Below are positions 25,099 to 47,234 of a DNA stretch of 64,000 nt, piece after piece; positions within the stretch are counted from its first letter, which is position 1, and the number at the start of each line of letters is the position of its first letter. Both the position numbers and the translations under genes were made by a program. The DNA lies in contig OX337229.1 in assembly GCA_946965045.2 (NCBI GenBank), forward strand, positions 4,960,001 through 5,024,000, given 5' to 3'. The notes beneath the pieces are model-generated. The model made no database searches. It saw only the letters and a list, made by a program, of their open reading frames with translations, and was not told the origin of the DNA. This stretch comes from Epithemia pelagica (lineage: Eukaryota > Protista > Bacillariophyta).

Positions 25099-28000
25099 AA
25101 AATAGGGGGGAGAAGGCAGAGGAGAGGGGGAGAGGAGGGGGAGAGGAGGGGGAGAGAGAAGGAGAGAAGAAGGAGATTCCGTAAGTCAGATTCCTTCATG
25201 AAATCGATCCGCGTATTGCTCGCAGTCTCACGTTTGTTTCCTCTGACGTATGAAATGTTCTAGGAAGCTCCAAACTTCCCTCAGAGGGGAGAAGGCACTT
25301 CCCCTCCAAAACGATTAAGCCCTTCATATCGTTTCAGCACCTTTTTGTTATTGAAACGACATTCTACACTGGTACAATCCTCCCGACCATCCGATGACCT
25401 TTCACGTGGTTCTACGTAGCATGTGATGAGGCGTATCCAGTCTGTGCTTCGCATCACAATCGGAACTGCTTGCACCTCGCACAAGATCTTGTCATAATTT
25501 TTTTTGCTACGATGTTACTCACTACGAATTTTTCTTTTTGTTGTTTGTCATGCACGTATTCAGGTCAATCAAGAGAATGAAGATGGTGCCTTGTTCAAGG
25601 CTCGTTTGGGGCAGCGTCGGTCATGGGGTGGACGTCCTTTCCCTCGTTCTACGCAGTACTTCATGTACTTGACGCAACAGAACTGGGTTTGGACACGAGG
25701 TGGTGGTCCGAAGGGAGGAAAGGTGGGCATGCATGTTGGGACGGATTGAAGACCACCCCAGCCATGGGGATTGCTGTGGAATGCAAAAGGGTATTGCTGT
25801 TGACCGGGGAGTGTTGTTGGCCGTTGCTGATTTTGCTTGTACGGGTTGACAGGTTGGTTTTTCTGCCTTGTTGTCGTTGTTGTTGTTGCCGATTGCAGTA
25901 CCACCAACCCATTTGCTGTTGTTGCCATTGCAGGTGTGCTGTTTGCTGCATTTTGAGGCTCTTTGTGTTGTTGTTGTTGATCCTGCACTGTCGCTGCTGA
26001 TTGATTTGTTGCTGCCATCGTTGTTGTTGGTAAGGCTTCGCTGTTGTTTGTAACCTTTTGCTTTTTGTTGCTGGTGTTGTTCTCATCCAAATCGTCGCTC
26101 TCTTTTTCTTCTCCCTCTCTTTCCTTTCTCTTATTGCTACTGATTGCCTGTGCTTGTGCTGTTTCTTGTTGTTGTGTCTGTTGTTGCCTTTCTTGCCGTG
26201 TCTGTTGTTGTGTTTCTGGCTGTGTCTGTGGTTGTTGTATTTTGGCTGGATTCTCCTCGCTGTCCAGTTGTTGGATTTCATCTTCGACCTCTGACTCCTC
26301 CTCTGCCAAACCCAACAATGGAATGGACGTGTCATGCGGCAACCTCTTCTTGTTGCTCGCACATTTTCGGCACTGGCATCGATCGTTGAGTGGATGCTTT
26401 GGAACTTGTTGCGTGATTTCTTTTCTCGTTTCCAGGTACTCGGAGAAAAACCGTTCTCCCGTATCTTCTGGAAGCTTCTCAACCTCTGGAAAGGGAGGAC
26501 AAGAAGCTCCAGACATCGAAGCAAGTATATTGATCATGTTTGTTTTGCATGCGTTACCAAAACTCACCACCATTTCCCATCCTGCAGGCACCACTGAACG
26601 TTCTTCTTGAGACTTCGTCATGATTCTCATCTTGTGACGAATTGCCCTGTTATACTGGGCCGTGCCTGCCAAATTCAAAGCATCTGCGAGAGTTTCTCGC
26701 ATGCCACAGTTGGCAAAATGCGTCAAATTATCATGAAAGCTCTCGAGCTTACTCTCTCCTCTCAAAGGTACGTACTCCACTAGCTGGTTGCTTGATCTTG
26801 GTGATGGAGGTATCTCACGATACATTTTCTCCACGGGCAAGGGATCAGCAAGGAACTTTGCCTTCTCTTTACAGTTTTCCAGTGCTTGATGTGTTTCGGC
26901 CGTAAAAAGAGGTTGATTGGAGTGTGGATCCAATCGGCCTCGTGCTGGTGGCTTGCCAGGAGTGGAAGTGCACTTGTATTTGCACTTCCACTCCTCCAAC
27001 TTGAGGACAATCGTATCGCCACCCCGAATAATCTTCCGTAAGTTCTTTGAGTACCTCTGTCAAAAGGTCTTGGTTCCCATCATTTCACTGATCTCTTTGT
27101 CTGTGTATTGTTTCTTGGAGCTTGACATGGTTCCATTTTTCAAACAACCAACAAGTTTCTCCAAGTCTTCAGGATGGTACTCGTAGATCGCATCCAACAA
27201 ATCCTTCATGGCTATCCCAAAGTCAATGTGCCGTTGTCTGAGCGTCTTGGTTATCCTCTGTATGAAATGGAAAAGGCCAAGACGGCCCTCCAAGTCATCA
27301 ACCAACAACAACCAAAAATCCTTGCCACAAGGCCATGTGTCAGAGTACATGGCCTTGGGGCAAAACCCGGTACGTCTCAGCACTTGTTCCGCAGCATGTG
27401 CAAACTTGAGTGCTGATGTGTTGTGCACTAACACTGCACAAGCAATTTCTCCTGCCTCTGTTGCCATGGTCCACATTGCAGCTGCATTGAGGCGTCTTGG
27501 ATAATTTTTCACTACCTGGTGGGTGTGGTCGTGAGCAAACATGTGCTGGCATCTAACCCCTTGAATCTCTCTTGTGTTTCTCTCATTGTCAGACACCATC
27601 CAGGGTTGCCATTTGGAGCTTGCTCCATCGTCATATAGCTGGCGGATTGTCTCGCCAAAAGGTGGGTAGCGAACCAGAAACTCACCATCCTTTTGCATGT
27701 AGTCTTCTGATTCTTTTCCTGTAGCAGCACAATAAGAATAGTACCTCATTGTCTTGTCTTCATAGCAGGTGTTGATTCCTTCATATAGCATCCGACTGAT
27801 GTGATCCCCATTGCCATAGGTTACCATTGATGCTTCCATTATCCTCGTAGCATCTTTAGCTAGATGCGATGTTCCTCTAGCATACTTGGGTTCCACTGGG
27901 TAACACATAGCCATGTAGGGAGGCAGTCGTGCGAGCAATTCTCCATCATTTGCATAGAAGGCAGCCGAGCACCCGGCACACTTGTATCCCATAAGTATTG

Positions 28001-29206
28001 CATACTTTGGGGGACCAGACATGGCGAAAATGGGGAAAAGGGACTTGTTTTTTGAAAAGTTCGATCGCGTACGCTGGAGATTACCCCGGCAACGAGGACA
28101 ACGCAAGTGGTTACTGGGGAAAAACAGCTCCCAATCAACAACCAGGAGTTCCTGTCCCACAATCGAGTCGTACAAAGCACTCGTGTTGTCGGCAATGGGG
28201 GGTACAGTAACGGTCATATTAGTGAAGAAAGGTTTCAAATTCTCAACACAACGCTTAGAACCAAGGCACGTGTCGGTCACATAACTCGCCAACGCATGCA
28301 CAGCACGTGGGACATGCACCTCCGTAGGTACTGCTGTCACACACGTAATTACCTCAAACTTGAAATCTTCGGCTGTTGGAACATACGCGCCTTCCTCGCC
28401 ACCAACGGTAGAACTTTCCGTTGCCGTAGTCTCCGTAGTTGATTGTGTTTTTTCATTTTCAGCGTCTCTTGTCGTTGCTTTTTTCGACGAGCAATTGGGA
28501 CGATGTTCCATGAAAGTGTTGAGTGCCTCCTGTGTGACATTGGAGGCGGACAATCTCTCTGCACTGGTAAGTTGCTTGCGGATTGCTTTGGCATGGGCAG
28601 CCTGGGCCTTTTCTGAGGCCACTACCTCTGCTCCTCTTCCATCGTTCATTCCCTTGCCCCTTGTTGTTGTGTTTTTGCTGCATCTGGGGTGGTGAGGGCG
28701 ACGAGGGATGGCCATTCCTCTTGCCTTGGCCCTGCAGATGGGGCAGTCGATGTCGGACTCAAAGATGACCAAAAGGTCCATCTTTCTCCAACCTGAACGC
28801 TTCTTCCAACTCTTCTTTGGCCAACGAGAGTACTGATTTCCGTATCGTTGCGACTGTGGCCCCATGGCCTTGGCCGCTGTGAATTGTGCTGCAGAACTCA
28901 TGATCTTTATTTGTTATTCTAACTTATTGAAGTGTATCCTCTTTTCCAGGCTTCTGACCATGCTCAAAAGGGTCATGAGATGGTCAGAAGAGGACTTGTC
29001 GCAATGGTCGACTTGGCCATGCCATGGGCGACCGTGAAGGACCGACCGGATCGGCTGATGGAATCTTCCCTCCATGTTTTTTGTCCGTGATTCGATGGGT
29101 TCCCGGGACACGGTAAGACACTTGTAACGACATTTGTTTCCTAAGTGATTTTTTGTGAAACGACATTTCTAACCCAATCATATTGCTGCCTTTTGAAACT
29201 AACACC
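25099..29206 (-). mobile_element. TIR-less DDE transposon, copy 1 (4108 bp), with a 9-bp TSD
   Basis: Colinear with 43164-47234. CCCTTGGTG is duplicated at 25090-25098 and 29207-29215. The 37-bp length difference from copy 2 is fully explained by +27, +11 and -1 bp indels. Confidence 0.9.
25569..28901 (-). pseudogene. Transposase of copy 1, interrupted by a CGA>TGA nonsense codon at 27060-27062
   Basis: ORFs 27060-28901 and 25569-26999 together match the 1101-aa ORF of copy 2. Copy 2 reads TTT CGA CAG where copy 1 reads TTT TGA CAG. Confidence 0.9.
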
Positions 29207-29576
29207 CCCTTGGTGTCACTCACAACCGACTATAGTCTCTACCGTCATTCCCCCCCCCCCCCCCCAGCCTTCAATCGTACTATATTCCCTCTCTCGAGTC
29301 CCACCAGTCTCTCATATCGTACTTTAAGTCCTAAAGTCAAGTACCTCCAGCCAAATATATAGACTGTATAGTACAAAATCACTCCTCATCTCCATATGAA
29401 ACGACTACAACCATGATATCATGTGTTTATCATTCCAAATCAACACAAGAAAACAGATGAGGATAATCACAACACAGAGGTACGTTACCCATATCTTGGT
29501 TGCTTTGCCTCTCTTCAACAATCAAACCATTGTCCTCTCTTATCTTGTCTCATACAACGAGACGAGGTCGAATCAA

Positions 29577-30520
29577 ATGGAAGGAGTCCAAGATACCGTT
29601 TCGACATTGGAAGATCCTTCCAGGAGGGATCCCCCTTCCTCCAACAAGAACAAATCTTCTTCCAACAAGAACAAGCCACGGCCCTCATCCAGTAAGAAGA
29701 AGACTTCCAGTTCAAAGAAGAAAAAGAAGAAGAAGCCTCCTCCTGCAGGTTCCAACGAATTGAAACGAAAACCCTCTGCACTCGAAGCCGAGAAGAAAAT
29801 TGTTGAGGAAGAGCTTGCACCAGTTGTGGAAGCCAAAGATGATTTCTTGGCGAATGAGAAATCTCTTGTTCCTCTTCTTGATTCTCCAAATCCATTATTC
29901 TTCGGCCATCCTAGTTGTTCACCGTACTGGCGTTGGATCCTTCATGTTGACTGGCCGGTGTTTGAACAATATCTGATCGATAACTCGGATGATATTCCCC
30001 AAACCCCCGGCATTCTCAAGCTGATAAACAACATGAAGACCAAAACCAAAATAGGAGACATGAAGAATCTCAAGTCGGCATTGACTCCCCAAGCCAAGAA
30101 TAAAGCCATGAAAGAGAAATACTCGAATCTTGTCCGTTATGTTGTCATCTGCCCACGCTGTTTTGCGAACAAAGACAAACCACTGGACGAATGTATCCTA
30201 CTTTGTGGGCTTAACAAAACATCCAACATAGCAACTCATATCGGCAAGTACCACAAAGATGTTCAAATTCAAGACGACGCCGATGATCCCTCTCCGATGA
30301 AAAGCCAAGGCACGCTAAGCTCCATGATCATAAAGGATGCATCCAAATCTACTGCTTCTACGGAACTAAGGCAGCTCATGTATCGGTTCATCAATGACTG
30401 CGCACTACCGGCAATTACGGCCGAGAAAAAAGAATTCCGAGATCTCATCTGGTACGCAATCAACAACAGTGCTGCTCTCCGCGACACACCGGCAGAGATC
30501 ATGAGCCGGCGGGAAATAAG
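29577..30520 (+). pseudogene. N-terminal part of a hAT transposase (BED zinc finger plus DNA-binding region); catalytic DDE domain absent
   Basis: ICPRC...KTSNIATHIGKYH (BED C2H2), then YRFINDCALPAITAEKKEFRDLI and IMSRREI. The frame then runs into the antisense strand of the glycosylase gene. Confidence 0.75.
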
Positions 30521-31198
30521 AGACCATTTATCCATTGGAACCCATGCTTCCAAATGTTTTGATGTCGCTAAGCTGCTGAGTTTTGGAGGCACCCAACCCA
30601 TCTTGTGTGCCCAGCGAATAACATGTATGTCTGAAGGTATACCGTCGACACGTCCGAATGCCGCCTCCAGTATTATGCATGCAGTCTTATACCCAATGCC
30701 ATCGAGGGTCATCAACTCGTGGATTGTAATGTTGTTGGGAATTATCCCATTGTGGCGCTGTAGAAAGTAGTCGGCCGCATTGACAATGCGCTCGGCGTTG
30801 ACGTTATATCGTCCAAGTCCCGATATTAGGGAGCACATAGCATCCATGCCGTACTTGTTGGCGATCTCCGACACAGCATCGGCAGACGTCATTCCACAAG
30901 CAAAAAGACGGGGCATTACGGAACTGAGTTGTAAATCTGAAGTGCTTGAACTCATACAGATCGTCATCAAGACCATGAATGGCCGATCTGAAAGAGGATC
31001 GTCCGCGTAATTGTTAATCCATGACTCCCAATCATCCCGAGGAGCCACGATTCCAAAGTGTTTCAACTCTTGGTGAAACATGACCAGTTGTCCGAGTTCT
31101 GTCAGTCGATGGTCTAGAACAGTTGCAGGAATGGGAGGGACTTTCACATGGAGATCGGATGGACGGAGTTTCTTGAGTTTGGGTGGCATGCCAGGCAT
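30269..31198 (-). CDS. Endonuclease III (Nth)-like HhH-GPD DNA glycosylase inside the hAT element; native C-terminus lost
   Basis: PFMVLMTICMSSSTSD corresponds to Nth PFELLIAVLLSAQATD. HhH motif LMTLDGIGYKTACIILEAAFG keeps the catalytic Lys, and GIPSDIHVIR keeps the catalytic Asp. Homology ends near 30520 and there is no [4Fe-4S] Cys motif. Confidence 0.85.
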   Translation of the reverse strand: MPGMPPKLKKLRPSDLHVKVPPIPATVLDHRLTELGQLVMFHQELKHFGIVAPRDDWESWINNYADDPLSDRPFMVLMTICMSSSTSDLQLSSVMPRLFACGMTSADAVSEIANKYGMDAMCSLISGLGRYNVNAERIVNAADYFLQRHNGIIPNNITIHELMTLDGIGYKTACIILEAAFGRVDGIPSDIHVIRWAHKMGWVPPKLSSLATSKHLEAWVPMDKWSLISRRLMISAGVSRRAALLLIAYQMRSRNSFFSAVIAGSAQSLMNRYMSCLSSVEAVDLDASFMIMELSVPWLFIGEGSSASS

Positions 31199-31383
31199 GT
31201 GGCGATCATCGTTGTCTTTTTGTTTATATTTGATGGTTTTTTTAGAACGTGAAATCGATTGAAGAAATAATGATATAATGGTGTTGCGAGAACGAGTGGA
31301 ATACGAATGTGTTGGATGCTGGGTATGCTGGGTAGCTTTCTTCTGTGGAGATTTAAGAAGATTCTTCTTTTTGGGAGATTTGT

Positions 31384-32124
31384 TCACAGCAGGTGGATTG
31401 TCTTTTTTTTGTCGGCATGTAGGGGAGGACAGTGTATCTTGTCGTATAGATGCGTCAATTGGGCAATATAAGGGGTGATGCAACTTGGAACACAGTCCTC
31501 TTGATCGGATTCTTCGCTGTTACATTCGCATAGAATATATTCGTTGACTAGTTGTTGAGGTTGTTGTGTGCAATGGAATCCAGTTGATGTGTGCATCATC
31601 CAGGACAGAATGATAGATTGGGATGAAACATTTGGACATTTTTGTTTTACACGATGGGTGTTTCTCATACATTCGTGAAAATGAGGGCATTGATCAATCT
31701 GTAGCGTGGGTGTACATTGAACAGTAAGTGTAAGACTCTTGCAATGATCAGGCATGAAGGGTTGAATTTCATGATCTGATGAATTCGGAACTTGCGGAGA
31801 TGGACCGTGTAGATGAGTAATGACAATGCCAGCAATGATTGTAAGCTTGTCGTCGTACTCCAAGGTGAACAATCTGCAAGCGTGAGTGTTGGACTTGCTC
31901 GTGTTTTCTTCTTTGCAAGAAATGGACCCAGAATTCTGAATTAACCATGCAACAGTAAATCGTTTCACCCATAGATGAAGTTGGCGTCGAAGAAGGTCTT
32001 TGGGAGATTGCTCTTGGATATATTTTTTCGTGTCTTCAAAGTAAGCAAAATTCGACTCCAGAATGAACTTCAGATTACATCGTGAAGAGAAATGAAGGTA
32101 TTTGCGAGAAGTTGATGGTTCCAT
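31384..32124 (-). CDS. Unknown ORF inside the hAT element, possibly the N-terminal half of the glycosylase gene
   Basis: Open frame from the ATG at 32124. It overlaps the glycosylase frame, and a one-base shift at the A8 run (31403-31410) would fuse them. Confidence 0.5.
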   Translation of the reverse strand: MEPSTSRKYLHFSSRCNLKFILESNFAYFEDTKKYIQEQSPKDLLRRQLHLWVKRFTVAWLIQNSGSISCKEENTSKSNTHACRLFTLEYDDKLTIIAGIVITHLHGPSPQVPNSSDHEIQPFMPDHCKSLTLTVQCTPTLQIDQCPHFHECMRNTHRVKQKCPNVSSQSIILSWMMHTSTGFHCTQQPQQLVNEYILCECNSEESDQEDCVPSCITPYIAQLTHLYDKIHCPPLHADKKKTIHLL

Positions 32125-32536
32125 ATACCTTGTTCCTTGAGTTGTGGAGGAATGGTTTGGGGGAGGAAAGTTGAGTGTGGGAGACACTTTTGTTCGATGG
32201 TTGATGGAGTGAGAGTGAGGTGCGAGGGTGTGAGGTGTGTTGCTGCTGATAGCGTTGTTGTGATGGGCGTGGGTCTCATGTGGGTCTCATGTACGTATAG
32301 TAGCGTGGTGGAGTATACATGGATTTCGTACTGTGAAGTCATGACTTAGGGACTATAGTACCATAGTACATGAAGATTATGAAAGGGACCATAGTCCCCA
32401 TAGTATAGTCCAATGTTGCATTTCGATGTACTATAGTCATCGGTGATAGTCTATGGGTGAGTGGAATTGGGACTATCAGTCAATGGACTATTCCATGTGT
32501 GGTGGCTAGGGTGAACTATAGTCATTTAGTACAGTC

Positions 32537-32606
32537 TACCGCGTTTGTAAATGGGATTGGTAGTCTCTTAGTACCGCGTTTGTAAATGGGATTAGTAGTC
32601 TCTTAG
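32537..32606 (+). repeat. 35-bp tandem duplication in the hAT right subterminal region
   Basis: TACCGCGTTTGTAAATGGGATT(G/A)GTAGTCTCTTAG x2. Confidence 0.9.
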
Positions 32607-33124
32607 TATAGTCCCATTAGAGTGTGAGATGGAGTGTAGTACCTATGGTCTAGTCAGGTACATATCGTAGATGGACTGAAAGTCATGTAGTCTAGTCTCG
32701 ACATGTTTGGGTGATACTTCACAGCTCTGCCCTCTACCCTCTAGCCTCTAGCCTCTAATGATTGAACAACGAGAAACAAGAGGAAGGAGTATTGTAAGTA
32801 AGGACGAGCGAATAACACAAAACACAATGTCAGAACAAGGAGTCAAGGAGCCGCCAACCAGTAACCAATAAACAACAAGAAACAAGACAACAAACTGAAC
32901 TCGTATGCGTCTTTCTGTAATTTGTCCGGTGGGTCACTCGTCACTCCAATTTCCAAATGTCTCGTGTACCCCACAACAGCTTTTCTCTGCTGCTCTACTA
33001 CTTCCAACGCTGGTATGCACATCCGCTGGAGAATAGGCTACCTGTGCTACCCTGATGAAAATGCTTTGCTACTAGGAGTACCTACTAGGAGTGTACTTAC
33101 GCCTCTAGGAGTAGTAACTTCTCC

Positions 33125-33530: not shown

Positions 33531-34278
33531 AGCCATATCTCTTCAGCGCTGGAGAGATCCAGCAGAGAAGAGCTGTTGCGGGTCCCACATCTAAGTAGGA
33601 CACCCGAGGAGGAAAGTAAAAAAGTAAGAAGAAAGGAAAAAACCCGAGTCATTGCAGGTTGGAAGGGGAGAGACGCTACCAGCAACCAAATAATAAAAAT
33701 ATTTGTTGAAAATCCATCGTCAGCAGTTTTCAAGACCAGAGTTACAATCGTGATTCCCAGACTCATTTTTAGAGAACAACGCCCAAAGGATCTTCTTCGA
33801 CAAGCATCAACTATAAACATTTATGCCATGACATTTTTGCTCTTGATTGCCCACATAATTCAAATATGGGACAATGTAGAATCCGGTGGGGAGTGGGGAC
33901 TACTCCTACTCGTAGTCCTACAATACGAGTAGTACGAGTAATAATATTAATTCGGACAACGTGTGCTTGTATGGAGAAGAGTGTAGTATAATACCGATAC
34001 AATAATAAGAATATTGGGAGGAGAAAAAGGGACCAAATTTCAATCGGACCACTGTACTATCCGTCTTTTTGTTGTGTAATCTTTGCTATGGAGTATGGGT
34101 AATGTGTATGGTGTGGAGGGATGTGCTAACGAAGAACAACCAAGGAGTAAGTGCTAATAAGCAAGAACCAATCCGAAGAGCCAAATGATTGGTTGTACCC
34201 CCTTTCAGCCACCGTTCTCTTCTCATTTCTCACCTGCCTGCATCGTGGCTCCACAGCGGACATTTCATAGAAGCAACC

Positions 34279-35391
34279 ATGGATTCGCAGGACACAGTAG
34301 TGTTATCTCCATGTACTTTCCTTTCTCCGGACGATGTGTTGATGGGCCGTGGAGCAAGAGCGACAGAGAACGAAGGTAATGTAAGATTCAGGCATATAGT
34401 CCGGGATCGACTGAACGAGTATGTTGCAGCTCTTCGGAGACAAGAGAAGGATCAGATTGCACGTGAAATCTTGGGGGCCGTGAAGAGCCGAAAAGGGAGG
34501 TTCATGCGAAAGTTAGATGGTGCTGACGGCTGCCCCAAGAAAAAATCACTTTACGTGGTTGTTGATGACGAAGTTGCACTCCTAAAAGTCAAGCAAGCAC
34601 TGCGAGACCAGAAGCTCGAGAGTTTAGAAGATCAACCTAAGGGTTCGAGGAAGGCTAAATCTCTCAGTGAGATTGCACTGATTCCCCCTGCGGAACATGT
34701 GGTCAGGAAAGAGGTGGTCGCAGAGACCACTCAACGGCAGAAAGCATATGCAGGAGCGCTGCATGTCGAGTTGCCGTCCCAGCCAGTTCTTTCAGTTGGT
34801 CCAAGTTCAGCAGTTTCTGATTCTCTTCTCCTGCATAAGATACTGCGCTCAAATCAAATTCACTCCGCGATCACAGGGCATGCCACTGCGGATCCATCTC
34901 CAGGAATCCTAAGCCCTCCGAACCGAGCACTTCTTACAGCATCCCAGCTTGATCTTTTGCCGGCAGCAAGTGGTCTTACATTGCCTTCTCTTGGTATCCA
35001 ACCGTCTTTGGCCAGTCAAGTCTCTGCCTATGAAAACTCGTTGTTGCTTGGGAATCAAGTTTCTGAGCTTGAAGCACTTGTGAAGCTGGGCCATTTGCAG
35101 CAGTCACGAAGTTCTCCTTTAGTATTGCAGTCAAGTCCGTATCTTGATCCTGCAGTAAGGGCAACCTTAGGATCAGGTTTGCAAGTTCTTGTACCACGAG
35201 AACGTTTGATTGACCCAGAACCAAGATCTCTACTTCTTCGCCAAGAACCGCAAGTAATCAGAAGCATGTTACATCAGGAACAGATTGCCCCATTATCTGT
35301 TCTGAAGCGGAGGATGATTGATACAAGCCCTCTCGTTGCAGATGAATATCTCAATCTCGAACGCCTGGTCAAGCGCCAGAGAGGGGTGTAA
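34279..35391 (+). CDS. DUF6824-like diatom domain protein
   Basis: DDVLMGRG...GNVRFRHIV...RQEKDQIAREILGAVKSRKGRF...KVKQALRD, followed by a low-complexity tail. Confidence 0.85.
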   Translation: MDSQDTVVLSPCTFLSPDDVLMGRGARATENEGNVRFRHIVRDRLNEYVAALRRQEKDQIAREILGAVKSRKGRFMRKLDGADGCPKKKSLYVVVDDEVALLKVKQALRDQKLESLEDQPKGSRKAKSLSEIALIPPAEHVVRKEVVAETTQRQKAYAGALHVELPSQPVLSVGPSSAVSDSLLLHKILRSNQIHSAITGHATADPSPGILSPPNRALLTASQLDLLPAASGLTLPSLGIQPSLASQVSAYENSLLLGNQVSELEALVKLGHLQQSRSSPLVLQSSPYLDPAVRATLGSGLQVLVPRERLIDPEPRSLLLRQEPQVIRSMLHQEQIAPLSVLKRRMIDTSPLVADEYLNLERLVKRQRGV

Positions 35392-36637: not shown

Positions 36638-38743
36638 ATGTCTATCTCTCTCCTTTGGCTTTGGCGCCTTCTGCCTTCCATACGTCCGACAATGGTGAAA
36701 AGAATCTCGGAGAAGTTTGGTCGACGGAGACGATCACGGTGCAGAAGAGATATCTTGATCGCATGTGCGCTGGGCACGGTCTGTACGGATGTGGATGCTT
36801 TCTCAGCTCTTGATTTTAGAACGAAAACGTCGTATCTTTCGACGACGTCCTCCGTCGTGATAGACAACATCTTAGACGAAGGCGACATTACTTGCGATGT
36901 GAATGGTCGTGACAACAGCGACCTGAGAATACCAGGCTCCAGGTTTTCGGTGAATGAATCCTCGCAGGACTTGTCAGTATCACCAAAATGGCTCGAAAGA
37001 TATTCAGAGTTTGCTCCAGAGCAAGTTGGCAATGAAATGAGACGTCTTGAATATCGGTTGTTGGAACAGGGATTTTGCATCAAAGATATAAGCCTTATCA
37101 TCGAAGACATATACATGGCGGCGAATGGCAATAGCGCTCTGGCGATTGGGATCGTAGAGTTCTTGAAGACGATGCTATCGCTTCAAGATAACAACTTTGA
37201 GAATGCGGCCTTCTTATCGACTCCGGTTCTTCTGGCAAGCATTGCCCACTTTGCCAACTCTGTTGCTCTCCAACCTCATATACCACCTTATTATACGGAA
37301 GACTGTTCAATGGTGTCCCCAGTGACGTCGCTTGCGCTTCCCCCAGCTATCAAGAGATCCACGGACGTGATCTCGAAATCAACAATGATCGTACTTTCTC
37401 CGCATACCGACTTTCCACTCCTGGCCGATTACAAAGAGGAAGTCGAATCCATTATACACGGGGCAGCAAGAATAAAGAGAGCCGAACTTCTTGTACACGC
37501 CATTTTGAAAGATAGAGCAGCCGCATCATCCAACAACGTTCGGAACCTATTACTCTCCGTCATGACAGACTGGAGGTCTTTGGGCATACGAGTGGTGGCG
37601 TCGCTCTACCGCCTGGAATGCTTTCTGGAATACAATCATGGTACAGGCGAGTACCTTTCGCACAGTCCCGAAGTTGTTCATACCGCAAAAGAAGCACTCA
37701 AAATTTACGCACCTCTGGCCCAAAGATTGGGTCTTCAAAAATTAAAGGCAAGAATCGAAGCCAAGGCGTTCAGGATTCTTTATAGGCGACAGTACAAGGC
37801 TGCATCCTCTATTTTCCGAGATGGCGGAGACGCAATGAATGCACTCTCTTCTTATCTGCGCTCTCATATTGCGCTAGTTCTGGAAGCGAACGAGCCTTTG
37901 ATGTCACAGGTAGACTACATAGAAGTTGTTTCTCGAGTGAAGGAACCATACTCTTTCTGGAAAAAATATCTCAAGAATGGATCCAAAAGGCCCTTATTGG
38001 GATCGTCCACTAGTATACGATCAACCGAGAGTTCAGCTCTTGCGATATCTCGGGTCAATGATGGTGTTGCTGTTCGAGTTATCATCAAAGCAAAAAAGGT
38101 TTGTCCGACGGAGGACGATGAAACCATTCGTTCACGGGAAAATCTACTTTGCTACTACGTACAAAACTTGATATGCGACATGTGGCCAGATATTGAAACG
38201 GGTAGGTTCAAAGACTATATCTTGAATCCTAAGCCGAACGGATACCAGAGTTTGCATCACACTTCAAAAATTGTCAGTAGAGGCGTGGAATTCCCCTTTG
38301 AAGTGCAGGTCCGATCTGAGGAAATGCACCGACTGGCGGAATTCGGTGTCGCGGCACACTGGGACTACAAACTGGGGTCTGCCACTGCTCATTCCGCACT
38401 CAAGGATGCTCAATCGCCCACTGGAGCATTGTCAATGGTGGGTTCCCAAAGTCAGCATCATCAAAATGATGCAAACGGAAAGGAGCCCAAGTCGTACGTT
38501 GAAGCTCTGGTTGTATCACAAGAAGAGATTTCAAGGAAACATGTCCATGTGTTTGTGGTAGGTGGAGAAAAAGGCAGAGAATACGGTGAGCTGATCTGTT
38601 TGCCCTTTGATTCTCCCATTAGTTCTGTGGCGGCTGAAATTGAAAAGCGCCTGTCGGCAAAGATTCAAGTGTGGAGGAATGGGAGAATTGCCGAGATGTG
38701 TGATACTTTGGAAAATGGTGACGTAGTATTGTTAGCCCTATAA
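36638..38743 (+). CDS. RSH: RelA/SpoT homologue, (p)ppGpp synthetase, probably plastid-targeted
   Basis: IYAPLAQRLG, RVKEPYSFWKK, KDYILNPKPNGYQSLH, FEVQVRSEEMHRLAEFGVAAHWDYK and a TGS-like tail. Leader ...VCTDVDA-F. The start codon is uncertain. Confidence 0.9.
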   Translation: MSISLLWLWRLLPSIRPTMVKRISEKFGRRRRSRCRRDILIACALGTVCTDVDAFSALDFRTKTSYLSTTSSVVIDNILDEGDITCDVNGRDNSDLRIPGSRFSVNESSQDLSVSPKWLERYSEFAPEQVGNEMRRLEYRLLEQGFCIKDISLIIEDIYMAANGNSALAIGIVEFLKTMLSLQDNNFENAAFLSTPVLLASIAHFANSVALQPHIPPYYTEDCSMVSPVTSLALPPAIKRSTDVISKSTMIVLSPHTDFPLLADYKEEVESIIHGAARIKRAELLVHAILKDRAAASSNNVRNLLLSVMTDWRSLGIRVVASLYRLECFLEYNHGTGEYLSHSPEVVHTAKEALKIYAPLAQRLGLQKLKARIEAKAFRILYRRQYKAASSIFRDGGDAMNALSSYLRSHIALVLEANEPLMSQVDYIEVVSRVKEPYSFWKKYLKNGSKRPLLGSSTSIRSTESSALAISRVNDGVAVRVIIKAKKVCPTEDDETIRSRENLLCYYVQNLICDMWPDIETGRFKDYILNPKPNGYQSLHHTSKIVSRGVEFPFEVQVRSEEMHRLAEFGVAAHWDYKLGSATAHSALKDAQSPTGALSMVGSQSQHHQNDANGKEPKSYVEALVVSQEEISRKHVHVFVVGGEKGREYGELICLPFDSPISSVAAEIEKRLSAKIQVWRNGRIAEMCDTLENGDVVLLAL

Positions 38744-38927
38744 ATTATGTAACAATTGATCACTTTGATCATGGTTGCATTGCTTGCAGATTGCAGAGCA
38801 TTTCTTTCTTGTGAGCGAAAAGGTCACAAAAAAGGATAGTTCTTCTCTATTATCATTTATGACTACGTAGGGGTTCCAGCCATTGCTCGGCTAAGGAATA
38901 GAGGGATTAGTTCTTAGAATCGGCGAA

Positions 38928-41900
38928 TCAACTGGTGAAAACCCATTTCCTCAAATCAAGCAGTTCAAGCCATGGAATGCTACTATACCCCTTCGTCGTA
39001 TACCATTCCGCAAAGTCGTCAAAACTCATGGACATGCATTTATCTGAGCCCTGTCTTGTTATGTGGCCTTGGAATGCCATTGAGGTCGCCCAATGGGCGG
39101 CAGAATCGACCACGCTCATAAGGGTTCTTGGCGATTGATCACACGGTTGCCCTTGAAGAGTTGTGAGCGCGTGGTGGATACCAGGGTCATCTTTCAAATG
39201 CGAAGTGAACGCAATGCTTAAAAGAACCGTAAGGAACGACTTCAGATAATTAGTCATATCATCACGACTAAGCTGGCCACGTTTTCTCTTATCGAGTACA
39301 TCAAAAGCAAACTCAAGTTTATCGCTCTTCTTTCCACTGCACAGGACAGTGAATCCACAAGCCACCTCAATCGCACTAACTCTTCCAGAACCATCGCGGT
39401 CGAACGAAGAGAATATGCCTGTTAGTACATGAAACAGGATTCTTTCCTCTTCTCTACCACCGGGATGTGTCGAGTACACAATGTTTCCAATAGCAGAGTC
39501 GAAAGCTTCTTGCGACAGCCTTGGGTTCTTGGACTTGGTGGCCTTGGCTAAAATACGGTTGCAGACGACTTCAGCCTCCATTCTGTGTAAGCTGGTACTC
39601 TCAAGGATCCGTCGGAGTTGGCTGATTCGCCTGTTGCTCATCGACAAGCTGTAACCATTATGGTCGTCGCTTGTGCTTAGGTGGAACTTCAGAGGGGGAG
39701 GACTAGGTGTGGGAGAATGATGGCGGGCGGGTTCAGGGGAGTGTGAGAATGATCGACTTATTCTTGGCGACCCGAGATCAAGCTCTTTGTCAGTGGAAGG
39801 CTGCATAAGAATCATATCCATTTCGTCGATCTACACAGGAAAGAAAATGTCTTAGTGAATGGAATGCTGCAAAATCAAGTAAAGATGTCAGAAACACTTA
39901 CACTGTCCATGGGCATTATGGTTGACTCAAAAAAGTCAGGATCAAGCTCATCCTCTGGTGGCGGAGGTGGAACGTCGGGGTCCGGCATCGAGACAGGAGG
40001 TGTGGGGGGCTTCGTTGTAGAAGAAGCTGCTTCCGGTCGTTTCTTCACTGAGTCAAGATGTTCCACCAAAACCCATTTTTTCAGATCAAGGAGTTCCAAC
40101 CACGGCGCACGTTCGCAGCCGCCATCATTGTACCATTGCCCAAACTCGTCAAAGTTGAGCCTATCCTTGTGTCGAAGATCCCACTGATGTCGCATTACGT
40201 CGTTACAAATCATATTTGCGGTGTCGGCGATACATCTCCCTACCATACCATCCGTCATGTCAAGACTTTGTCGACAACACGAGAAGGTAACGATCAAAAT
40301 TGATCGCAAGAAGAGGAACAAGTCTTCCCCACTCAATGAATGGGCAATGAACTCTTTCTTCTTCTTTTGTTGTATTCCAGGACGTGTATCAAACACCCCG
40401 AACGCAAAAGCGAGTTTATGACTTTTCTTGCCACCACACAAGAGAGTTAGACCCCCCATCAACTCGTCGGCTGCTACACTATCGCGCTGTTCCAGATCAA
40501 AGCATTGAAAAAAGTTCGAAAGAAGTTCAGAGGTCCGCATCCTGTCAGGATGGCCAGGTTTATTTCGTCGGAGAACTGGACAAATTTCGCCCATGCATGA
40601 CAAGAAAGTTTCCATCGATATGTACACTGTTCCTTGGCTTGAATCCGAAGCTCTCTTCTTCTTTTCGACCAATTTGGACAGTTGAGCCCAAAGCTCGTTT
40701 GGGTTCATTGATAGAAGCCCCAGGAGTTCGACTACCCCGCGAACATATGCAGCGTCATCTTTCAATACAACCAGAGACCTGTGGTTAGCCAGGGGGAAAG
40801 TGAAAAGAATCTCGGGAGGAGGACCTTTTCGACCAGAATGGTGACGTCTAAGCGAGGACATTTTATCTCTTGTATTCGGAGCACCTGAACTGGTCACTCC
40901 TGCTTCCAAGCTTGACGGACCAATGAGAGACAGTACTTTGTTCAGGTCAAGGAGTTCAAGCCAAGGAGCAACTTCATAGCCACCGTTGCTATACCATGTT
41001 GCAAAACTTTCGAAGGAATAGCGCCCTGAATGAAATCCCTTGCGACCGTCGCTACTGTACTTTAAGAAGTGCCCAAGCGTCCATTTTGCACCGCTCTCAA
41101 CTGCCGATCGCATCTCGTTGGTGTGGCGATGAGCTATGACACCTGACGAGTTGTGATTAGAAATGGGAACGAGCACAGACATGGCCACAAGCATCGTCAG
41201 ATAAGAAGTTAGGTAGCGGCGCAAATGATCTTCGTCAAGATAGTTCTTCCGTTGATCGTCAAGAACCTCGAACCCCGTGGCCAGTTTGGAACTCTTATTC
41301 CCTGAGCAGAAAAAGCAGAATCCTACAGCGAACTCTTGGAGATCAACCTCGTTGCTCTTGAGACCAGGCTTGTTTCCTTCAAAGCAGGAGAAGATTTCGG
41401 TAAAACAACCTGTAAACGCTTCTCGTTCCACCAACGAAAGCTGGTCAAATACTTCCCCGCTCAATATCTGACCAATGGAATTCATCCATACATCTCGAGA
41501 CAAGGTAAGAATGGTATCTGCTCCAGCTGGTCGGCGCTGTGACAGGCGAAGAAGCTTCTTGCACATTGATGAGGCTGGGCAGTGCATTAATCCGGTGCGA
41601 TGAACAAAATGACGAAGCGCGTAAAGATTGTTTTCCGAGATTTCAATGCAAAGTGGCTTCGGGTGCCCCGATCCGCTGAAATCAAACGACACTAAAGGTT
41701 TGCTGTTGTCTTCACCCCTCGGTCTTGGAAATGATTGTGTCTTTGGAGGGTCATCAGGGTTATCAAAGATGGTGTCTTTGTCGAAGCTGATTTGTTCCAT
41801 GGCTTCTTCTCGCGGTCCAAGGTTCTCTTTCTCTTCGGAGGGAGATACGGCCTCATGCCGTTCTGCAACCAGTTTCCATTTCGAGATCGAAAGAAGTTCA

Positions 41901-42691
41901 AGCCATGGGGCAACGAACTTACCCTTCTCTGAATACCATTCCTTAAATATCCTTACGGATGCATGCTCAAGTGATTTATCCTTGGCAAAGTTTAACACCT
42001 GCTCCGTTCCGTACACTGCAACATCTTCAATCTCTTTGGGGATTTCGCGTTGGTCTTCGTCGTGCAGTGTCACAAGAGATCCATCAAAGGAAGACACTTG
42101 AAGCGGATCAGGGGAGCTTCTAGGAATGCTCTCGTCGGATGTATCTTCACGCTTTACCCTTTTCCGTGGTGGTTCTATTGAAGGCGATCGCTCACCCCCA
42201 CCAGCTGGAGAGTTTTCGGTGCCACAGCAATATGTGATTGTTGTTAGCAAGGTTCGAAACAGAGATAGAAGTCCGGATCGAGGTAAGTCTGTCTGCCCTG
42301 GAGACGCGAAGGCTTCAAACAATGCTGTGAGCTTCTCATCGAACTCGGAAATATGGAACAACACAAATGACGCTTTGCGTTCGACTTGTGTCAGCGGAGA
42401 AGCATTTAACTTGTTTCTATAAATAGAGATGGCCTCGTCATTGCTCTCGTTGGATGCCTTGAACATCATTTCGTGTAGCGGAGAAGCCGATGGATTCTTC
42501 TTCTCATTGTGTGGAACCGTGGACGAGACGTCCACGGAGCCTTTCAATAGTATGGTAGTGATGGCATTGCTGACTTTCATAAAGTGTTCGGCATCCTTCT
42601 TACTAACTTGGATCGTTATGGAGGGAACTGGCGACGAGCTGATGGGTCGCTTGTCCCCAGCGCATGCAATTGTCCCCGAACCATCATCCAT
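38928..42691 (-). CDS. Large protein with repeated EF-hand-like (recoverin/CBL-like) modules; intron 39831-39901
   Basis: Three units of C(S/G)G(N/K)KSxKLxx(G/A)FxVxD, each followed by FxxWYxxxGxxxxPWLELLDL, plus a partial fourth unit. One canonical loop, FDRDGSGRVSAIE. An upstream exon is possible. Confidence 0.8.
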
Positions 42692-43163
42692 GGCCAAAGT
42701 CGAGTTCCCCAATGTCTTTGGTTACAAAAAACACGATTCTAGGACACCAGACGTTCAATGGACCAGTTATGTCGATTCAGAGCGTCAATATTGTCAAGCT
42801 GTTACCCAACTTTCGGAAAGTCCAAACCTACTTTCACTTGAATGACGACGTCCTTGGATTGATTGTCATCAATCGATCCAACTAAGCAAAAAGGAAAAAA
42901 CATTAATGAGTGAGGTTGGCCGCCCCCACCAACACTTGCCCGCGACACGGAATTGTTTTGTTGATATGGTGAGAGCGCGCGAGCGCGAGTTCTTCTATCA
43001 ATTCAAATAGCCAGCATTTCTGGTACAAATTCCACGAGGATTCAACGTACATTCTGGGGGTCCGGTGTCAATGACTCGGGAACCTGCGCGTACGCAGAAA
43101 GACACTTTTGCGCGGGGAACACTCCCCCACATTCCCAATAGATACACGCCCCATCCCCAGACG

Positions 43164-46100
43164 AAAATAGGGGGGGAGAAGGCAGAGGAGAGGGGGAGAG
43201 GAGGGGGAGAGAGAAGGAGAGAAGAAGGAGATTCCGTAAGTCAGATTCCTTCATGAAATCGATCCGCGTATTGCTCGCAGTCTCACGTTTGTTTCCTCTG
43301 ACGTATGAAATGTTCTAGGAAGCTCCAAGCTTCCCTCAGAGGGGAGAAGGCACTTCCCCTCCAAAACGATTAAGCCCTTCATGTCGTTTCAGCACCTTTT
43401 TGTTATTGAAACGACATTCTACACTGGTACAATCCTCCCGACCATCCGATGACCTTTCACGTGGTTCTACGTAGCATGTGATGAGGCGTATCCAGTCTGT
43501 GCTTCGCATCACGATCGGAACTGCTTGCACCTCGCACAAGATCTTGACATAATTTTTTTTGCTACGATGTTACTCACTACGAATTTTTCTTTTTGTTGTT
43601 TGTCATGCAGGTATTCAGGTCAATCAAGAGAATGAAGATGGTGCCTTGTTCAAGGCTCGTTTGGGGCAGCGTCGGTCATGGGGTGGACGTCCTTTCCCTC
43701 GTTCTACGCAGTACTTCATGTACTTGACGCAACAGAACTGGGTTTGGACACGAGGTGGTGGTCCGAAGGGAGGAACGGTGGGCATACATTGCGGGACGGA
43801 TTGAAGACCACCCCAGCCATGGGGATTGCTGTGGAATGCAAAGGGGTATTGCTGTTGATCGGGGAGTGTTGTTGGCCGTTGCTGATTTTGCTTGTACGGG
43901 TTGACAGGTTGGTTTTTCTGTCTTGTTGTCGTTGTTGTTGTTGTCGATTGCAGTACCACCAACCCATTTGCTGTTGTTGCCATTGCAGGTGTGCTGTTTG
44001 CTGCATTTTGAGGCTCTTTGTGTTGTTGTTGTTGATCCTGCACTGTCGCTGCTGATTGATTTGTTGCTGCCATCGTTGTTGTTGGTAAGGCTTCGCTGTT
44101 GTTTGTAACCTTTTGCTTTTTGTTGCTGGTGTTGTTCTCATCCAAATCGTCGCTCTCTTTTTCTTCTCCCTCTCTTTCCTTTCTCTTATTGCTACTGATT
44201 GCCTGTGCTTGTGCTGTTTCTTGTTGTTGTGTCTGTTGTTGTGTTTCTTGCCGTGTCTGTTGTTGTGTTTCTGGCTGTGTCTGTGGTTGTTGTATTTGTT
44301 GGATTTCATCTTCGACCTCTGACTCCTCCTCTGCCAAACCCAACAATGGAATGGACGTGTCATGCGGCAACCTCTTCTTGTTGCTCGCACATTTTCGGCA
44401 CTGGCATCGATCGTTGAGTGGATGCTTTGGAACTTGTTGTGTGATTTCTTTTCTCGTTTCCAGGTACTCGGAGAAAAACCGTTCTCCCGTATCTTCTGGA
44501 AGCTTCTCAACCTCTGGAAAGGGAGGACGAGAAGCTCCAGACATCGAGGCAAGTATATTGATCATGTTTGTTTTGCATGCGTTACCAAAACTCACCACCA
44601 TTTCCCATCCTGCAGGCACCACTGAACGTTCTTCTTGAGACTTCGTCATGATTCTCATCTTGTGACGAATTGCCCTGTTAAACTGGGCGGTGCCTGCCAA
44701 ATTCAAAGCATCTGCGAGAGTTTCTCGCATGCCACAGTTGGCAAAATGCGTCAAATTGTCATGAAAGCTCTCGAGCTTACTCTCTCCTCTCAAAGGTACG
44801 TACTCCACTAGCTGGTTGCTTGATCTTGGTGATGGAGGTATCTCACGATACATTTTCTCCACGGGCAAGGGATCAGCAAGGAACTTTGCCTTCTCTTTAC
44901 AGTTTTCCAGTGCTTGATGTGTTTCGGCCGTAAAAAGAGGTTGATTGGAGTGTGGATCCAATCGGCCTCGTGCTGGTGGCTTGCCAGGAGTGGAAGTGCA
45001 CTTGTATTTGCACTTCCACTCCTCCAAGTTGAGGACAATCGTATCGCCACCCCGAATAATCTTCCGTAAGTGCTTTGAGTACCTCTGTCGAAAGGTCTTT
45101 GTTCCCATCATTTCACTGATCTCTTCGTCTGTGTATTGTTTCTTGGAGCTTGACATGGTTCCATTTTTCAAAGAACCAACAAGTTTCTCCAAGTCTTCAG
45201 GATGGTACTCGTAGATTGCATCCAACAATTCCTTCATGGCTATCCCAAAGTCAATGTGCCGTTGTCTGAGCGTCTTGGTGATCCTCTGTATGAAATGGAA
45301 AAGGCCAAGACGGCCCTCCAAGTCATCAACCAACAACAACCAAAAATCCTTGCCACAAGGCCATGTGTCAGAGTACATGGCCTTGGGGCAAAACCCGGTA
45401 CGTCTCAGCACTTGTTCCGCAGCATGTGCAAACTCGAGTGCTGATGTGTCGTGCACTAACACTGCACAAGCAATTTCTCCTGTCTCTGTTGCCATGGTCC
45501 ACATTGCAGCTGCATTGAGGCGTCTTGGATAATTTTTCACTACCTGGTGGGTGTGGTCGTGAGCAAACATGTGCTGGCATCTAACCCCTTGAATCTCTCT
45601 TGTGTTTCTCTCATTATCAGACACCATCCAGGGTTGCCACTCGGAGCTTGCTCCATCATCATATAGCTGGCGGATTGTCTCGCCTAAAGGTGGGTAGCGA
45701 ACCAGAAACTCACCATCCTTTTGCACGTAGTCTTCTGATTCTTTTCCTGTAGCAGCACAATAAGAATAGTATCTCATTGTCTTGTCTTCATAGTAGGTGT
45801 TGATTCCTTCATAAAGCATCCGACTAATGTAATCCCCATTGCCATAGGTTACCATTGATGCTTCCATAATCCTCGTAGCATCTTTAGCTAGATGCGATGT
45901 TCCTCTAGCATACTTGGATTCCACTGGGTAACACATAGCCATGTAGGGAGGCAGTCGTGCGAGCAATTCTCCATCATTCGCATAGAAGGCAGCCGAGCAC
46001 CCGGCACACTTGTATCCCATAAGTATTGCATACTTTGGGGGACCAGACATGGCGAAAATGGGGAAAAGGGACTTGTTTTTTGAAAAGTTCGATCGCGTAC

Positions 46101-47234
46101 GCTGGAGATTACCCCGGCAACGAGGACAACGCAAGTGGTGACTGGGGAAAAACAGCTCCCAATCAACAACCAGGAGTTCCTGTCCCACAATCGAGTCGTA
46201 CAAAGCACTCGTGTTGTCGGCAATGGGGGGTACAGTAACGGTAATATTAGTGAAGAAAGGTTTCAAATTCTCAACACAACGCTTAGAACCAAGGCACGTG
46301 TCGGTCACATAACTCGCCAACGCATGCACAGCACGTGGGACATGCACCTCCGTAGGTACTGCTGTCACACGCATAATTACCTCAAACTTGAAATCTTCGG
46401 CTGTTGGAACATACACGCCTTCCTCGCCACCAACGGTAGAACTTTCCGTTGCCGTAGTCTCCGTAGTTGATTGTGTTTTTTCATTTTCAGCGTCTCTTGT
46501 CGTTGCTTTTTTCGACGAGCAATTTGGACGATGCTCCATGAAAGTGTTGAGTGCCTCCTGTGTGACATTGGAGGCGGACAATCTCTCTGCACTGGTAAGT
46601 TGCTTGCGGATTGCTTTGGCATGGGCAGCCTGGGCCTTTTCTGAGGCCACTACCTCTGCTCCTCTTCCATCGTTCATTCCCTTGCCCCTTGTTGTTGTGT
46701 TTTTGCTGCATCTGGGGTGGTGAGGGCGATGAGGGATGGCCATTCCTCTTGCCTTGGCCCTGCAGATGGGGCAGTCAATGTCGGACTCAAAGATGACCGA
46801 AAGGTCCATCTTTCTCCAACCTGAACGCTTCTTCCAACTCTTCTTTGGCCAACGAGAGTACTGATTTCCGTATCGTTGCGACTGTGGCCCCATGGCCTTG
46901 GCCGCTGTGAATTGTGCTGCAGAACTCATGATCTCTATTTGTTATTCTAACTTATTGAAGTGTATCCTCTTTTCCAGGCTTCTGACCATGCTCAAAAGGG
47001 TCATAAGATGGTCAGAAGAGGACTTGTCGCAATGGTCGACTTGGCCATGCCATGGGCGACCGTGAAGGACCGACCGGATCGGCTGATGGAATCTTCCCTC
47101 CATGTTTTTTGTCCGTGATTCGATGGGTTCCCGGGACACGGTAAGACACCTGTAACGACATTTGTTTCCTAAGTGATTTTTTGTGAAACGACATTTCTAA
47201 CCCAATCATATTGCTGCCTTTTGAAACTAACACC
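43164..47234 (-). mobile_element. TIR-less DDE transposon, copy 2 (4071 bp), with an intact ORF
   Basis: Same termini as copy 1 (AAAATAGGGGGG... and ...GAAACTAACACC) in the same orientation. No clean TSD. Confidence 0.9.
43624..46929 (-). CDS. 1101-aa putative DDE transposase (MULE/Dada-like, DUF6729-type signature)
   Basis: Candidate catalytic residues in FAHDHTHQ (D), MYSDTWP (D), RLGLFHFIQR (xxxH motif) and GESKLESFH (E). Zn-binding motifs CPIC..HHPRC, CPRC..YKCAGC and C-terminal CC..C..GRPPHDRRC. Gln/Thr-rich linker. Confidence 0.75.
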   Translation of the reverse strand: MSSAAQFTAAKAMGPQSQRYGNQYSRWPKKSWKKRSGWRKMDLSVIFESDIDCPICRAKARGMAIPHRPHHPRCSKNTTTRGKGMNDGRGAEVVASEKAQAAHAKAIRKQLTSAERLSASNVTQEALNTFMEHRPNCSSKKATTRDAENEKTQSTTETTATESSTVGGEEGVYVPTAEDFKFEVIMRVTAVPTEVHVPRAVHALASYVTDTCLGSKRCVENLKPFFTNITVTVPPIADNTSALYDSIVGQELLVVDWELFFPSHHLRCPRCRGNLQRTRSNFSKNKSLFPIFAMSGPPKYAILMGYKCAGCSAAFYANDGELLARLPPYMAMCYPVESKYARGTSHLAKDATRIMEASMVTYGNGDYISRMLYEGINTYYEDKTMRYYSYCAATGKESEDYVQKDGEFLVRYPPLGETIRQLYDDGASSEWQPWMVSDNERNTREIQGVRCQHMFAHDHTHQVVKNYPRRLNAAAMWTMATETGEIACAVLVHDTSALEFAHAAEQVLRRTGFCPKAMYSDTWPCGKDFWLLLVDDLEGRLGLFHFIQRITKTLRQRHIDFGIAMKELLDAIYEYHPEDLEKLVGSLKNGTMSSSKKQYTDEEISEMMGTKTFRQRYSKHLRKIIRGGDTIVLNLEEWKCKYKCTSTPGKPPARGRLDPHSNQPLFTAETHQALENCKEKAKFLADPLPVEKMYREIPPSPRSSNQLVEYVPLRGESKLESFHDNLTHFANCGMRETLADALNLAGTAQFNRAIRHKMRIMTKSQEERSVVPAGWEMVVSFGNACKTNMINILASMSGASRPPFPEVEKLPEDTGERFFSEYLETRKEITQQVPKHPLNDRCQCRKCASNKKRLPHDTSIPLLGLAEEESEVEDEIQQIQQPQTQPETQQQTRQETQQQTQQQETAQAQAISSNKRKEREGEEKESDDLDENNTSNKKQKVTNNSEALPTTTMAATNQSAATVQDQQQQHKEPQNAANSTPAMATTANGLVVLQSTTTTTTTRQKNQPVNPYKQNQQRPTTLPDQQQYPFAFHSNPHGWGGLQSVPQCMPTVPPFGPPPRVQTQFCCVKYMKYCVERGKGRPPHDRRCPKRALNKAPSSFS

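Follow-up and report, generated by a model that had tools for sequence, protein, structure and literature searches.

What kind of mobile element has left two nearly identical copies of about 4.1 kb at one locus of the diatom Epithemia pelagica, and how does such an element, lacking terminal inverted repeats (TIRs), find its ends and its targets? The window, by which we mean the whole stretch of 64,000 nucleotides analysed (positions 4,960,001 to 5,024,000 of the forward strand of contig OX337229.1, assembly GCA_946965045.2), had been interpreted in a first-pass annotation as carrying a young TIR-less DDE transposon with a 9-bp target-site duplication (TSD), a mixture of Dada and Mutator-like (MULE) features and possibly an undescribed diatom lineage. 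According to our analysis, the two copies very probably belong to a DNA transposon of the Dada superfamily, autonomous and free of introns, for which we propose targeting of pseudo right ends. The lineage is indeed a divergent diatom clade, but of a described superfamily: it shows nearly all structural hallmarks of Dada, and the suggestion of something undescribed does not extend to the superfamily level.

Self-comparison of the window by BLASTN yielded one long direct repeat, 25135-29209 versus 43190-47237 (97.8% identity over 4075 columns), with a short left extension. Boundary alignment, supported by the genome-wide junctions, placed copy 1 (locus L011) at 25098-29208 (4111 bp) and the intact copy 2 (locus L001) at 43163-47236 (4074 bp), both with the coding strand minus. 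They differ by 68 substitutions and three indels of 1 bp (in a G-run), 11 bp and 27 bp. Their tips are identical, coordinates being given on the plus strand: the left one reads GAAAATAGGGGGG..., and on the right the identity ends after ...GAAACTAACACCCC. A search for inverted repeats between the ends of the copies found none, and the left and right ends, compared as inverted repeats, match at 11 of 30 positions. The exact common termini and the lack of TIRs, both reported in the first-pass annotation, are therewith borne out.

The only long open reading frame (ORF) of the element lies on the minus strand. Copy 2 retains it in an intact, intron-free form (43624-46929, minus strand, in the ORF listing), predicted to encode a transposase of 1101 amino acids, so that this copy could, as had been supposed, be active. 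In copy 1 a single CGA>TGA change breaks the ORF: the premature TGA at 27060-27062, which corresponds to CGA at 45088-45090 of copy 2, closes an N-terminal fragment of 613 codons (27060-28901, minus strand), and the ORF listing contains a C-terminal fragment of 476 amino acids as well (25569-26999, minus strand). The 27-bp length difference is in frame and falls into a Gln/Thr-rich repeat of the ORF with a 12-nt periodicity (44197-44314, minus strand, in copy 2; 26166-26262 in copy 1).

The putative transposase possesses an N-terminal CCHC cluster (C53, C56, H70, C74), a CCCC zinc finger before the core (C268, C271, C308, C311), the catalytic residues D458, D521 and E720 with the signature G542-x-x-H545, a CxCxxC cluster at 842-847 and a C-terminal CC..H..C cluster at 1066-1088. 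The four cysteines of the finger, D458, D521, G542, H545, E720 and H723 are invariant in an alignment of 35 homologues, which upholds the D-D-GxxH-E signature noticed earlier; C1066, C1067 and C1088 are nearly invariant and are accompanied by a conserved GRPPH. A word-based search retrieved 92 homologues; where these are named, the source is Seminavis robusta or Nitzschia inconspicua, both diatoms, and they and the genes around the copies point to a diatom host, probably of the raphid pennate group. An exhaustive profile search retrieved 2542 clusters (50% identity) at E<=1e-3; the best 150 of these profile matches are all close relatives and provide no bridge to named Dada proteins. Pfam searches with the whole protein and with four pieces of it gave only sub-threshold noise at E<=10 (TraG-D_C, Ripply), and searches of PDB sequences by the protein and by the profile gave no match.

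A structure prediction had been recommended in the first-pass annotation. At the level of the predicted structure, a DDE fold of the RNase H type with an inserted helical domain is confirmed, because the AlphaFold model of residues 230-830 is a confident one (predicted local distance difference test, pLDDT, 93.2; predicted template modelling score, pTM, 0.89) and is matched to DDE transposases and integrases by both Foldseek and VIA-align. Foldseek ranked first the transposase of ISCth4, an IS256-family element (6xg8_A, E 3.9e-5), with retroviral integrases next; VIA-align, which is independent of Foldseek, aligned ISCth4 with Z 12.6 over 347 residues, integrases with Z 9-10, Hermes with 8.7 and the P element with 8.2, lower matches being Mu, TnsB, Tn5 and RAG. 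The best match, ISCth4 (PDB 6xg8; Kosek et al., PMC7780238), shares with the diatom protein the DDE core with an inserted helical domain, but it is a prokaryotic protein of about 400 amino acids with some 10% sequence identity, its element has true TIRs and an 8-bp TSD, and its copy-out/paste-in transposition has been demonstrated biochemically, whereas the diatom element is known from sequence. The likeness to the IS256 family is structural only: there is no Pfam match to Transposase_mut, there are no TIRs, and the TSD is of 6-7 bp versus 8-9 bp.

Could the element nevertheless be of the rolling-circle (Helitron/IS91-like) type or be driven by a recombinase, as its head-to-tail arrays and numerous TSD-less copies, described below, might suggest? 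The protein fold contradicts this. The only ORF encodes a DDE protein of RNase H fold, Pfam revealed no Rep/helicase and no tyrosine or serine recombinase domain, and real 6-7-bp TSDs are present in 11 of 28 junction pairs; we consider such a mode of movement extremely improbable.

As to the place of the element among DDE transposons, it falls with MULE/MuDR, hAT and P elements into the broad [C/D]xxH group, whose transposases have an RNase H fold and an insertion domain; the structural alignments with Hermes and the P element point there as well. These three differ from it in possessing TIRs and in the length of their TSDs, 8 bp for hAT and P and 9-11 bp for MULE, and none of their Pfam domains occurs in our protein. 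Dada is a DDE group of the same IS256/MULE/hAT/P-like [C/D]xxH grouping. It was defined in 2013 by Kojima and Jurka (PMC3706591) by a DDE transposase with a DxxH signature, by the absence of TIRs and by 6-7-bp TSDs, with weak HHpred similarity to integrases and Mu; the described examples include Dada-U6_DR, Dada-U1A_DR and Dada-tL_DR. Comparison by eye of the window protein with Dada-U6_DR (Dataset S1 of PMC3706591) revealed five motifs in the same order, flanking the DDE core: MFAHDHTHQV (ILKMDSTKKV in Dada-U6_DR), GEIACAVLV (GQVLMCVLT), AMYSDTWPC (LLYVDRDCC), RLGLFHFIQRI (RLDVWHFMRRF) and RGESKLESFHDNLTHF (RGSTSLESFHLHLNRF). The CCCC finger preceding the core and the stretch D..L..LP / FP / GN(S/G) that follows it match as well by eye, and both proteins have a C-terminal Cys/His cluster, the spacing of which in the diatom protein differs from the C-x2-C...H...C of Dada-U6_DR.

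The same assignment is suggested by the ESM Atlas, where the top clusters are DUF6729 (PF20499) with scores of 0.94-0.97 and Mutator clusters reach only 0.79-0.80; together with the order of the motifs, this bears out the likeness to DUF6729/Dada proteins that had been noted at first reading. One of the DUF6729 clusters is fungal and combines DUF6729 with a DEDDy exonuclease. PF20499 itself is matched by 5 of the 35 aligned homologues (best E 7.8e-6) and by a paralogue with 44% identity in the same genome, and the match falls on the region of the CCCC zinc finger rather than on the catalytic core. For annotation this means that the DUF6729 model of Pfam picks out the zinc-finger part of Dada transposases and overlooks the diatom clade.

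The family was surveyed in the whole 60.5-Mb assembly (23 contigs) with copy 2 as the DNA query. This search found 22 full-length copies (96-100% identity) as well as several fragments and more remote relatives of about 65% identity; a later one added four further copies of the same family (family 1) on C7 with a 4105-bp spacing, bringing its copy number in the genome to at least 26. Pairwise identity of the 22 copies is 97.3-100%, an ORF of 1076-1110 amino acids is kept in 13 of these 22 copies inspected, and their flanks are unique sequence, except for one segmental duplication and for nested or tandem cases. The family is thus young and dispersed, and it is probably still active. Variable sites at codon positions 1/2/3 number 78/76/118, and this third-position excess may be taken as a modest sign of selection on the transposase during the spread of the family. 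The segmental duplication, of about 20 kb, contains the element and accounts for two of the loci, L007 (C10:1299771-1303870) and L006 (C10:1320122-1324221), whose flanks are identical over at least 1.4 kb on both sides; these are not two insertions. Another pair, L023 (C17:1442035-1444428) and L024 (C17:1459040-1460752), consists of halves of one family-1 copy, which is broken at position ~1680; the halves, both in the same orientation, are separated by about 15 kb as the result of a large insertion or rearrangement.

Two sister families have the same terminal motifs, their DNA being only about 65% identical to that of family 1: family 2 of 4.46 kb with an ORF of 1244 amino acids (P0002) and family 3 of 4.26 kb with an ORF of 1132 amino acids (P0003). 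At the right end, the last ~45 bp (TCTAACCCAATCATATTGCTGCC...) are conserved in families 1-3 far better than the remainder of the element. The already mentioned 44%-identical paralogue belongs to a fourth, older Dada family; its ORF of 793 amino acids (L034:955-3333, minus strand; C7:2187954-2190332) has weak matches to DUF6729 and to CxC5 (KDZ-associated cysteine cluster), and the right end of this older element has served as the target of a family-2 insertion with the TSD TATTGC. Other ORFs of 823-1153 amino acids matching DUF6729 lie at C13:1707438-1727683, C5:2498464-2503054, C3:1569029-1569490 and C10:2021993-2022430; two of them exceed the Pfam cut-off, and five are spaced regularly by 4955 bp, probably forming another tandem Dada array.

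Where exactly does the element end? We examined the junctions of the 22 family-1 copies and of 7 copies of the two sister families, 28 junction pairs altogether. In the 22 full-length copies and in the 7 sister-family copies the right tip falls after four Cs. The base following C4 is C, A or T among copies that are more than 99.4% identical; this base is therefore part of the target, and the family-wide comparison gives ...AACACCCC as the right tip of the element. An exact flank repeat of at least 6 bp, with a 6-7-bp core, abuts the tips in 11 of the 28 junction pairs, versus about 1% of mismatched junction pairs, all of which come from arrays with a common spacer.

These results change the reading of copy 1, where CCCTTGGTG is present on both sides and had been taken for a 9-bp TSD. 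The apparent 9-bp repeat is a 6-bp TSD, CTTGGT, plus target CC(C) at -8/-7 that merges with the C-run of the element: since the right tip ends after C4 and the base beyond it is target, the duplicated sequence is CTTGGT, the left copy of which occupies 25092-25097, in a register backed by the logo of the flanks, and the right copy 29209-29214, as seen in the junction table. Copy 2 lacks an abutting TSD, its flanks reading CCAGAC and CCAATC, and has no more than a displaced 7-mer, ATCCCCA. Displaced TSDs sought within 18 nt of the tips appeared as 7-8-mers only at L001, L010 and L014, in C-rich DNA, and are suggestive at best. At L021 (C4:2972379-2976470) 11 extra bases (ATACCCCGTAG), either filler or carried-over flank, separate a possible short TSD, CGCAA, from the left tip. 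The duplication of the family is thus 6-7 bp long, which is the Dada value, and the notion of a Dada-like protein combined with a MULE-like 9-bp TSD has to be abandoned. A Mutator-like lineage that has lost its TIRs and retained a 9-bp TSD would have accounted for the repeat around copy 1, and Mutator clusters do appear in the ESM Atlas at the lower scores given above. It is contradicted by the family-wide junction table, including copy 2 without any TSD, by the absence of TIRs, and by the protein, which has no MULE, Mutator or Transposase_mut match in Pfam at E<=10 and whose motifs match Dada; we regard it as highly improbable.

The common right tip bears on one more interpretation, that of a larger hAT transposon at 24956-32736 with an endonuclease III-type glycosylase as cargo. 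An HhH-GPD base-excision glycosylase ORF does lie to the right of copy 1 (30272-31483, minus strand), and the structural match to Hermes (Z 8.7) could be read in the same sense. All 22 copies, however, share the right tip, which in copy 1 is at 29208, and have unique flanks beyond it; the glycosylase ORF is outside the element and is missing from the other copies, and neither a hAT dimerisation domain nor an 8-bp TSD nor TIRs are present. A hAT element with cargo can therefore practically be dismissed.

Although the ends are not inverted repeats of each other, AAGGCAG and CTGCCTT at positions 17-23 of each end make up a short subterminal inverted repeat. On the plus strand AAGGCAG of the left end is found at 43179-43185 in copy 2 and at 25113-25119 in copy 1, and its inverted partner CTGCCTT, 16 nt from the right tip, at 47214-47220 and 29186-29192, respectively.

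The same kind of sequence recurs in the targets. In a logo of 22 independent, non-nested left flanks, positions -28 to -25 are occupied by T, G, C and C in 13, 16, 13 and 16 cases, position -16 by C in 17, and positions -8 and -7 by C in 14 each. TGCC starts exactly at -28 in 10 of these 22 flanks, all 60-nt flanks together holding only 18 TGCC. With a 6-bp TSD, the bases and distances in the flank equal those of the element's own right end, TGCC-TTTTGAAA-C-TAACAC-CC-CC. This comparison shows that the sequence immediately preceding the TSD is similar to the right end of the element, in the same register (TGCC-N8-C-N7-CC, then the cut). In copy 1 the target TGCC (-28..-25) is at 25070-25073 and the target CC (-8/-7) at 25090-25091, both on the plus strand and both resembling the right end. 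The search for a target consensus proposed in the first-pass annotation has accordingly given a motif on the left only: no motif was found in the right flanks. The possibility that the flanks are remnants of old elements or members of a repeat family was considered and rejected, the flanks being unique. Only one small-RNA gene was detected in the vicinity of a junction, a tRNA-Leu(CAA) gene at L013:376-458, some 1 kb upstream of a family-1 copy and away from the insertion site.

Head-to-tail arrays with 6-7-bp spacers, as well as TSD-less copies, are frequent both here and in metagenomic relatives. L017 and L016 follow each other head to tail, and CTACTC both separates them and recurs after L016; at C3:1547000-1566999 (L031 and L035) three elements are separated and followed by CTACAAC; at C7:2968000-2987999 (L032 and L036) elements of three families succeed each other with 6-bp spacers unlike one another, so that families 1, 2 and 3 form mixed arrays. 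Further arrays, including one at C7:254098-267742, are suggested by regularly spaced copies on C7, C13 and C5. Tandem neighbours are 99.98-100% identical (1 mismatch in 4098 bp; 0 in 4459 bp). Such self-targeting is to be expected, because a real right end with its flank is a perfect version of the target motif. Among metagenome contigs scanned for the conserved right-end motif, 119 matched, most of them probably by chance; 11 of the 119 encode a 39-47%-identical transposase in the right orientation, and in all 11 TGCC stands 18 nt from a C-rich tip. L056 is a complete element of 3.65 kb with a 6-bp TSD, CAATTA; L089, likewise complete, shows no TSD but carries the target bases TGCC at -28 and C at -16; in L092 and L146 a right end is followed, after 6 bp, by a left end. 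The rules for ends and targets hold across the clade.

We suppose that the DNA-binding module that would read CTGCCTT at the ends of the element also reads a pseudo right end in the target. The bound module would set the attack on the top strand 18 nt from TGCC, just where cleavage falls at the real right end, and the left end would then be joined 6-7 bp further on. The best possible target of such a reaction would be a real right end with its flank, and hence head-to-tail arrays with 6-7-bp spacers would arise. The TSD-less majority, having the motif in the left flank and an unrelated right flank, might stem from uncoupled or one-ended joining of the left end, with which they agree; the same was proposed for zebrafish Dada, whose chimeric flanks have been attributed to one-ended transposition (PMC3706591). 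The TSD-less copies as reciprocal recombinants between copies were rejected: no left-flank 6-mer equals the start of the right flank of another copy.

The structural match to ISCth4 raises the question of whether the reaction is two-ended integration at all. In ISCth4/IS256 the DNA flanking the recipient end is attacked by the donor end, always at a set distance from a subterminal site, and the resulting spacers are of 5-7 bp with an optimum of 6 (PMC7780238). An attack position set by a subterminal binding site would, in our proposal, be common to ISCth4 and the diatom element, and junctions of abutted ends with spacers of 5-7 bp are another shared trait. By analogy, an IS256-like asymmetric reaction (copy-out/paste-in or via a tandem dimer) could join the left 3'-OH 6-7 bp outside a right or pseudo right end, in which case strand transfer from an end to a flank, and not ordinary two-ended integration, would have produced the apparent target motif, the arrays and the TSD-less copies alike. 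Such a reaction agrees with the best structural match, which extends over almost the whole length of the ISCth4 transposase, with the similarity of the spacers (6-7 bp here), with the identity of tandem neighbours, as in IS dimers, and with the 17 of 28 copies that lack a TSD yet keep the left-flank motif. Yet the other 11 of 28 have a TSD as long as the spacer, and plain two-ended integration into a mimic site explains them; no circle or figure-eight junction was seen; and ISCth4 has a TSD of 8 bp but a spacer of 6 bp. MULEs, the eukaryotic relatives of IS256 that have been studied, transpose by cut-and-paste. Because integration into the mimic site explains the TSD-bearing copies and nothing shows circles, we consider the asymmetric reaction rather unlikely and prefer integration into pseudo right ends. 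If it nonetheless proved true, Dada would be the first eukaryotic copy-out/paste-in DDE transposon, and the chimeric flanks of zebrafish Dada would be explained.

Several facts speak against the assignment to Dada and the targeting proposed with it. The Pfam DUF6729 model does not match the window protein even at E<=10, and the comparison with Dada was made by eye on short motifs and not as a scored alignment. The first residue of DxxH is D in all Dada sequences of Dataset S1 that were compared, whereas in the 35 homologues it is the invariant G542. Every Dada with defined ends in PMC3706591 resides in a small-RNA gene, and no tRNA or Rfam small-RNA gene was found at any diatom junction examined. 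No TSD accompanies 17 of the 28 junction pairs, the tips were defined by comparing copies, and transposition is inferred from genomic copies.

Targeting of tRNA and snRNA genes describes the Dada families with defined ends, while membership in the superfamily is set by the transposase. TSD-less copies occur in published Dada families too, and tandem copies separated by one TSD, as well as many copies with flanks that do not belong together, are known for them (PMC3706591); both traits are shared by the diatom element. Also shared are the lack of TIRs, short subterminal inverted repeats mirrored in the target, and a 6-7-bp TSD preceded by a C-rich or CT motif (CCCCT|GCGAA in Dada-U6/U1). The differences are the GxxH signature instead of DxxH; a single intron-free ORF (in PMC3706591 only the Perkinsus Dada is without introns); the size of 4.1 kb versus 4.7-11 kb; targets that are unique sequences with a degenerate mimic of the right end, and not tRNA/snRNA genes; and the absence of a DEDDy exonuclease insert. 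The element is a new form within an already known superfamily, set apart by the G-for-D signature, the lack of introns, the small size and a target outside RNA genes.

Dada has been little studied: our literature search found no biochemistry of it, nothing on DUF6729 and no paper on Dada in diatoms. Until now its ends could be defined only in tRNA and snRNA genes, and the clean ends described here are the first outside RNA genes. About 30 nearly identical, intact, intron-free and arrayed copies in unique DNA, with sharp tips and a readable target rule, make the element a convenient model for the way in which a TIR-less DDE transposase picks its ends and targets, and one that allows testing for IS256-like asymmetric chemistry. 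In diatom genomes it is a likely active mutagen and a possible tool.

The remaining features of the window lie outside the two copies. Between them there are host-like genes encoding a DUF6824 protein (34189-35388, plus strand), a RelA/SpoT homologue with an HD domain (36638-38740, plus strand) and an EF-hand protein (38931-39821, minus strand), and an ORF of 945 amino acids (39875-42712, minus strand), which has no Pfam match and ends about 450 bp from copy 2. The self-comparison of the window also revealed a tandem duplication of about 35 bp, 97% identical, at 32537-32608.

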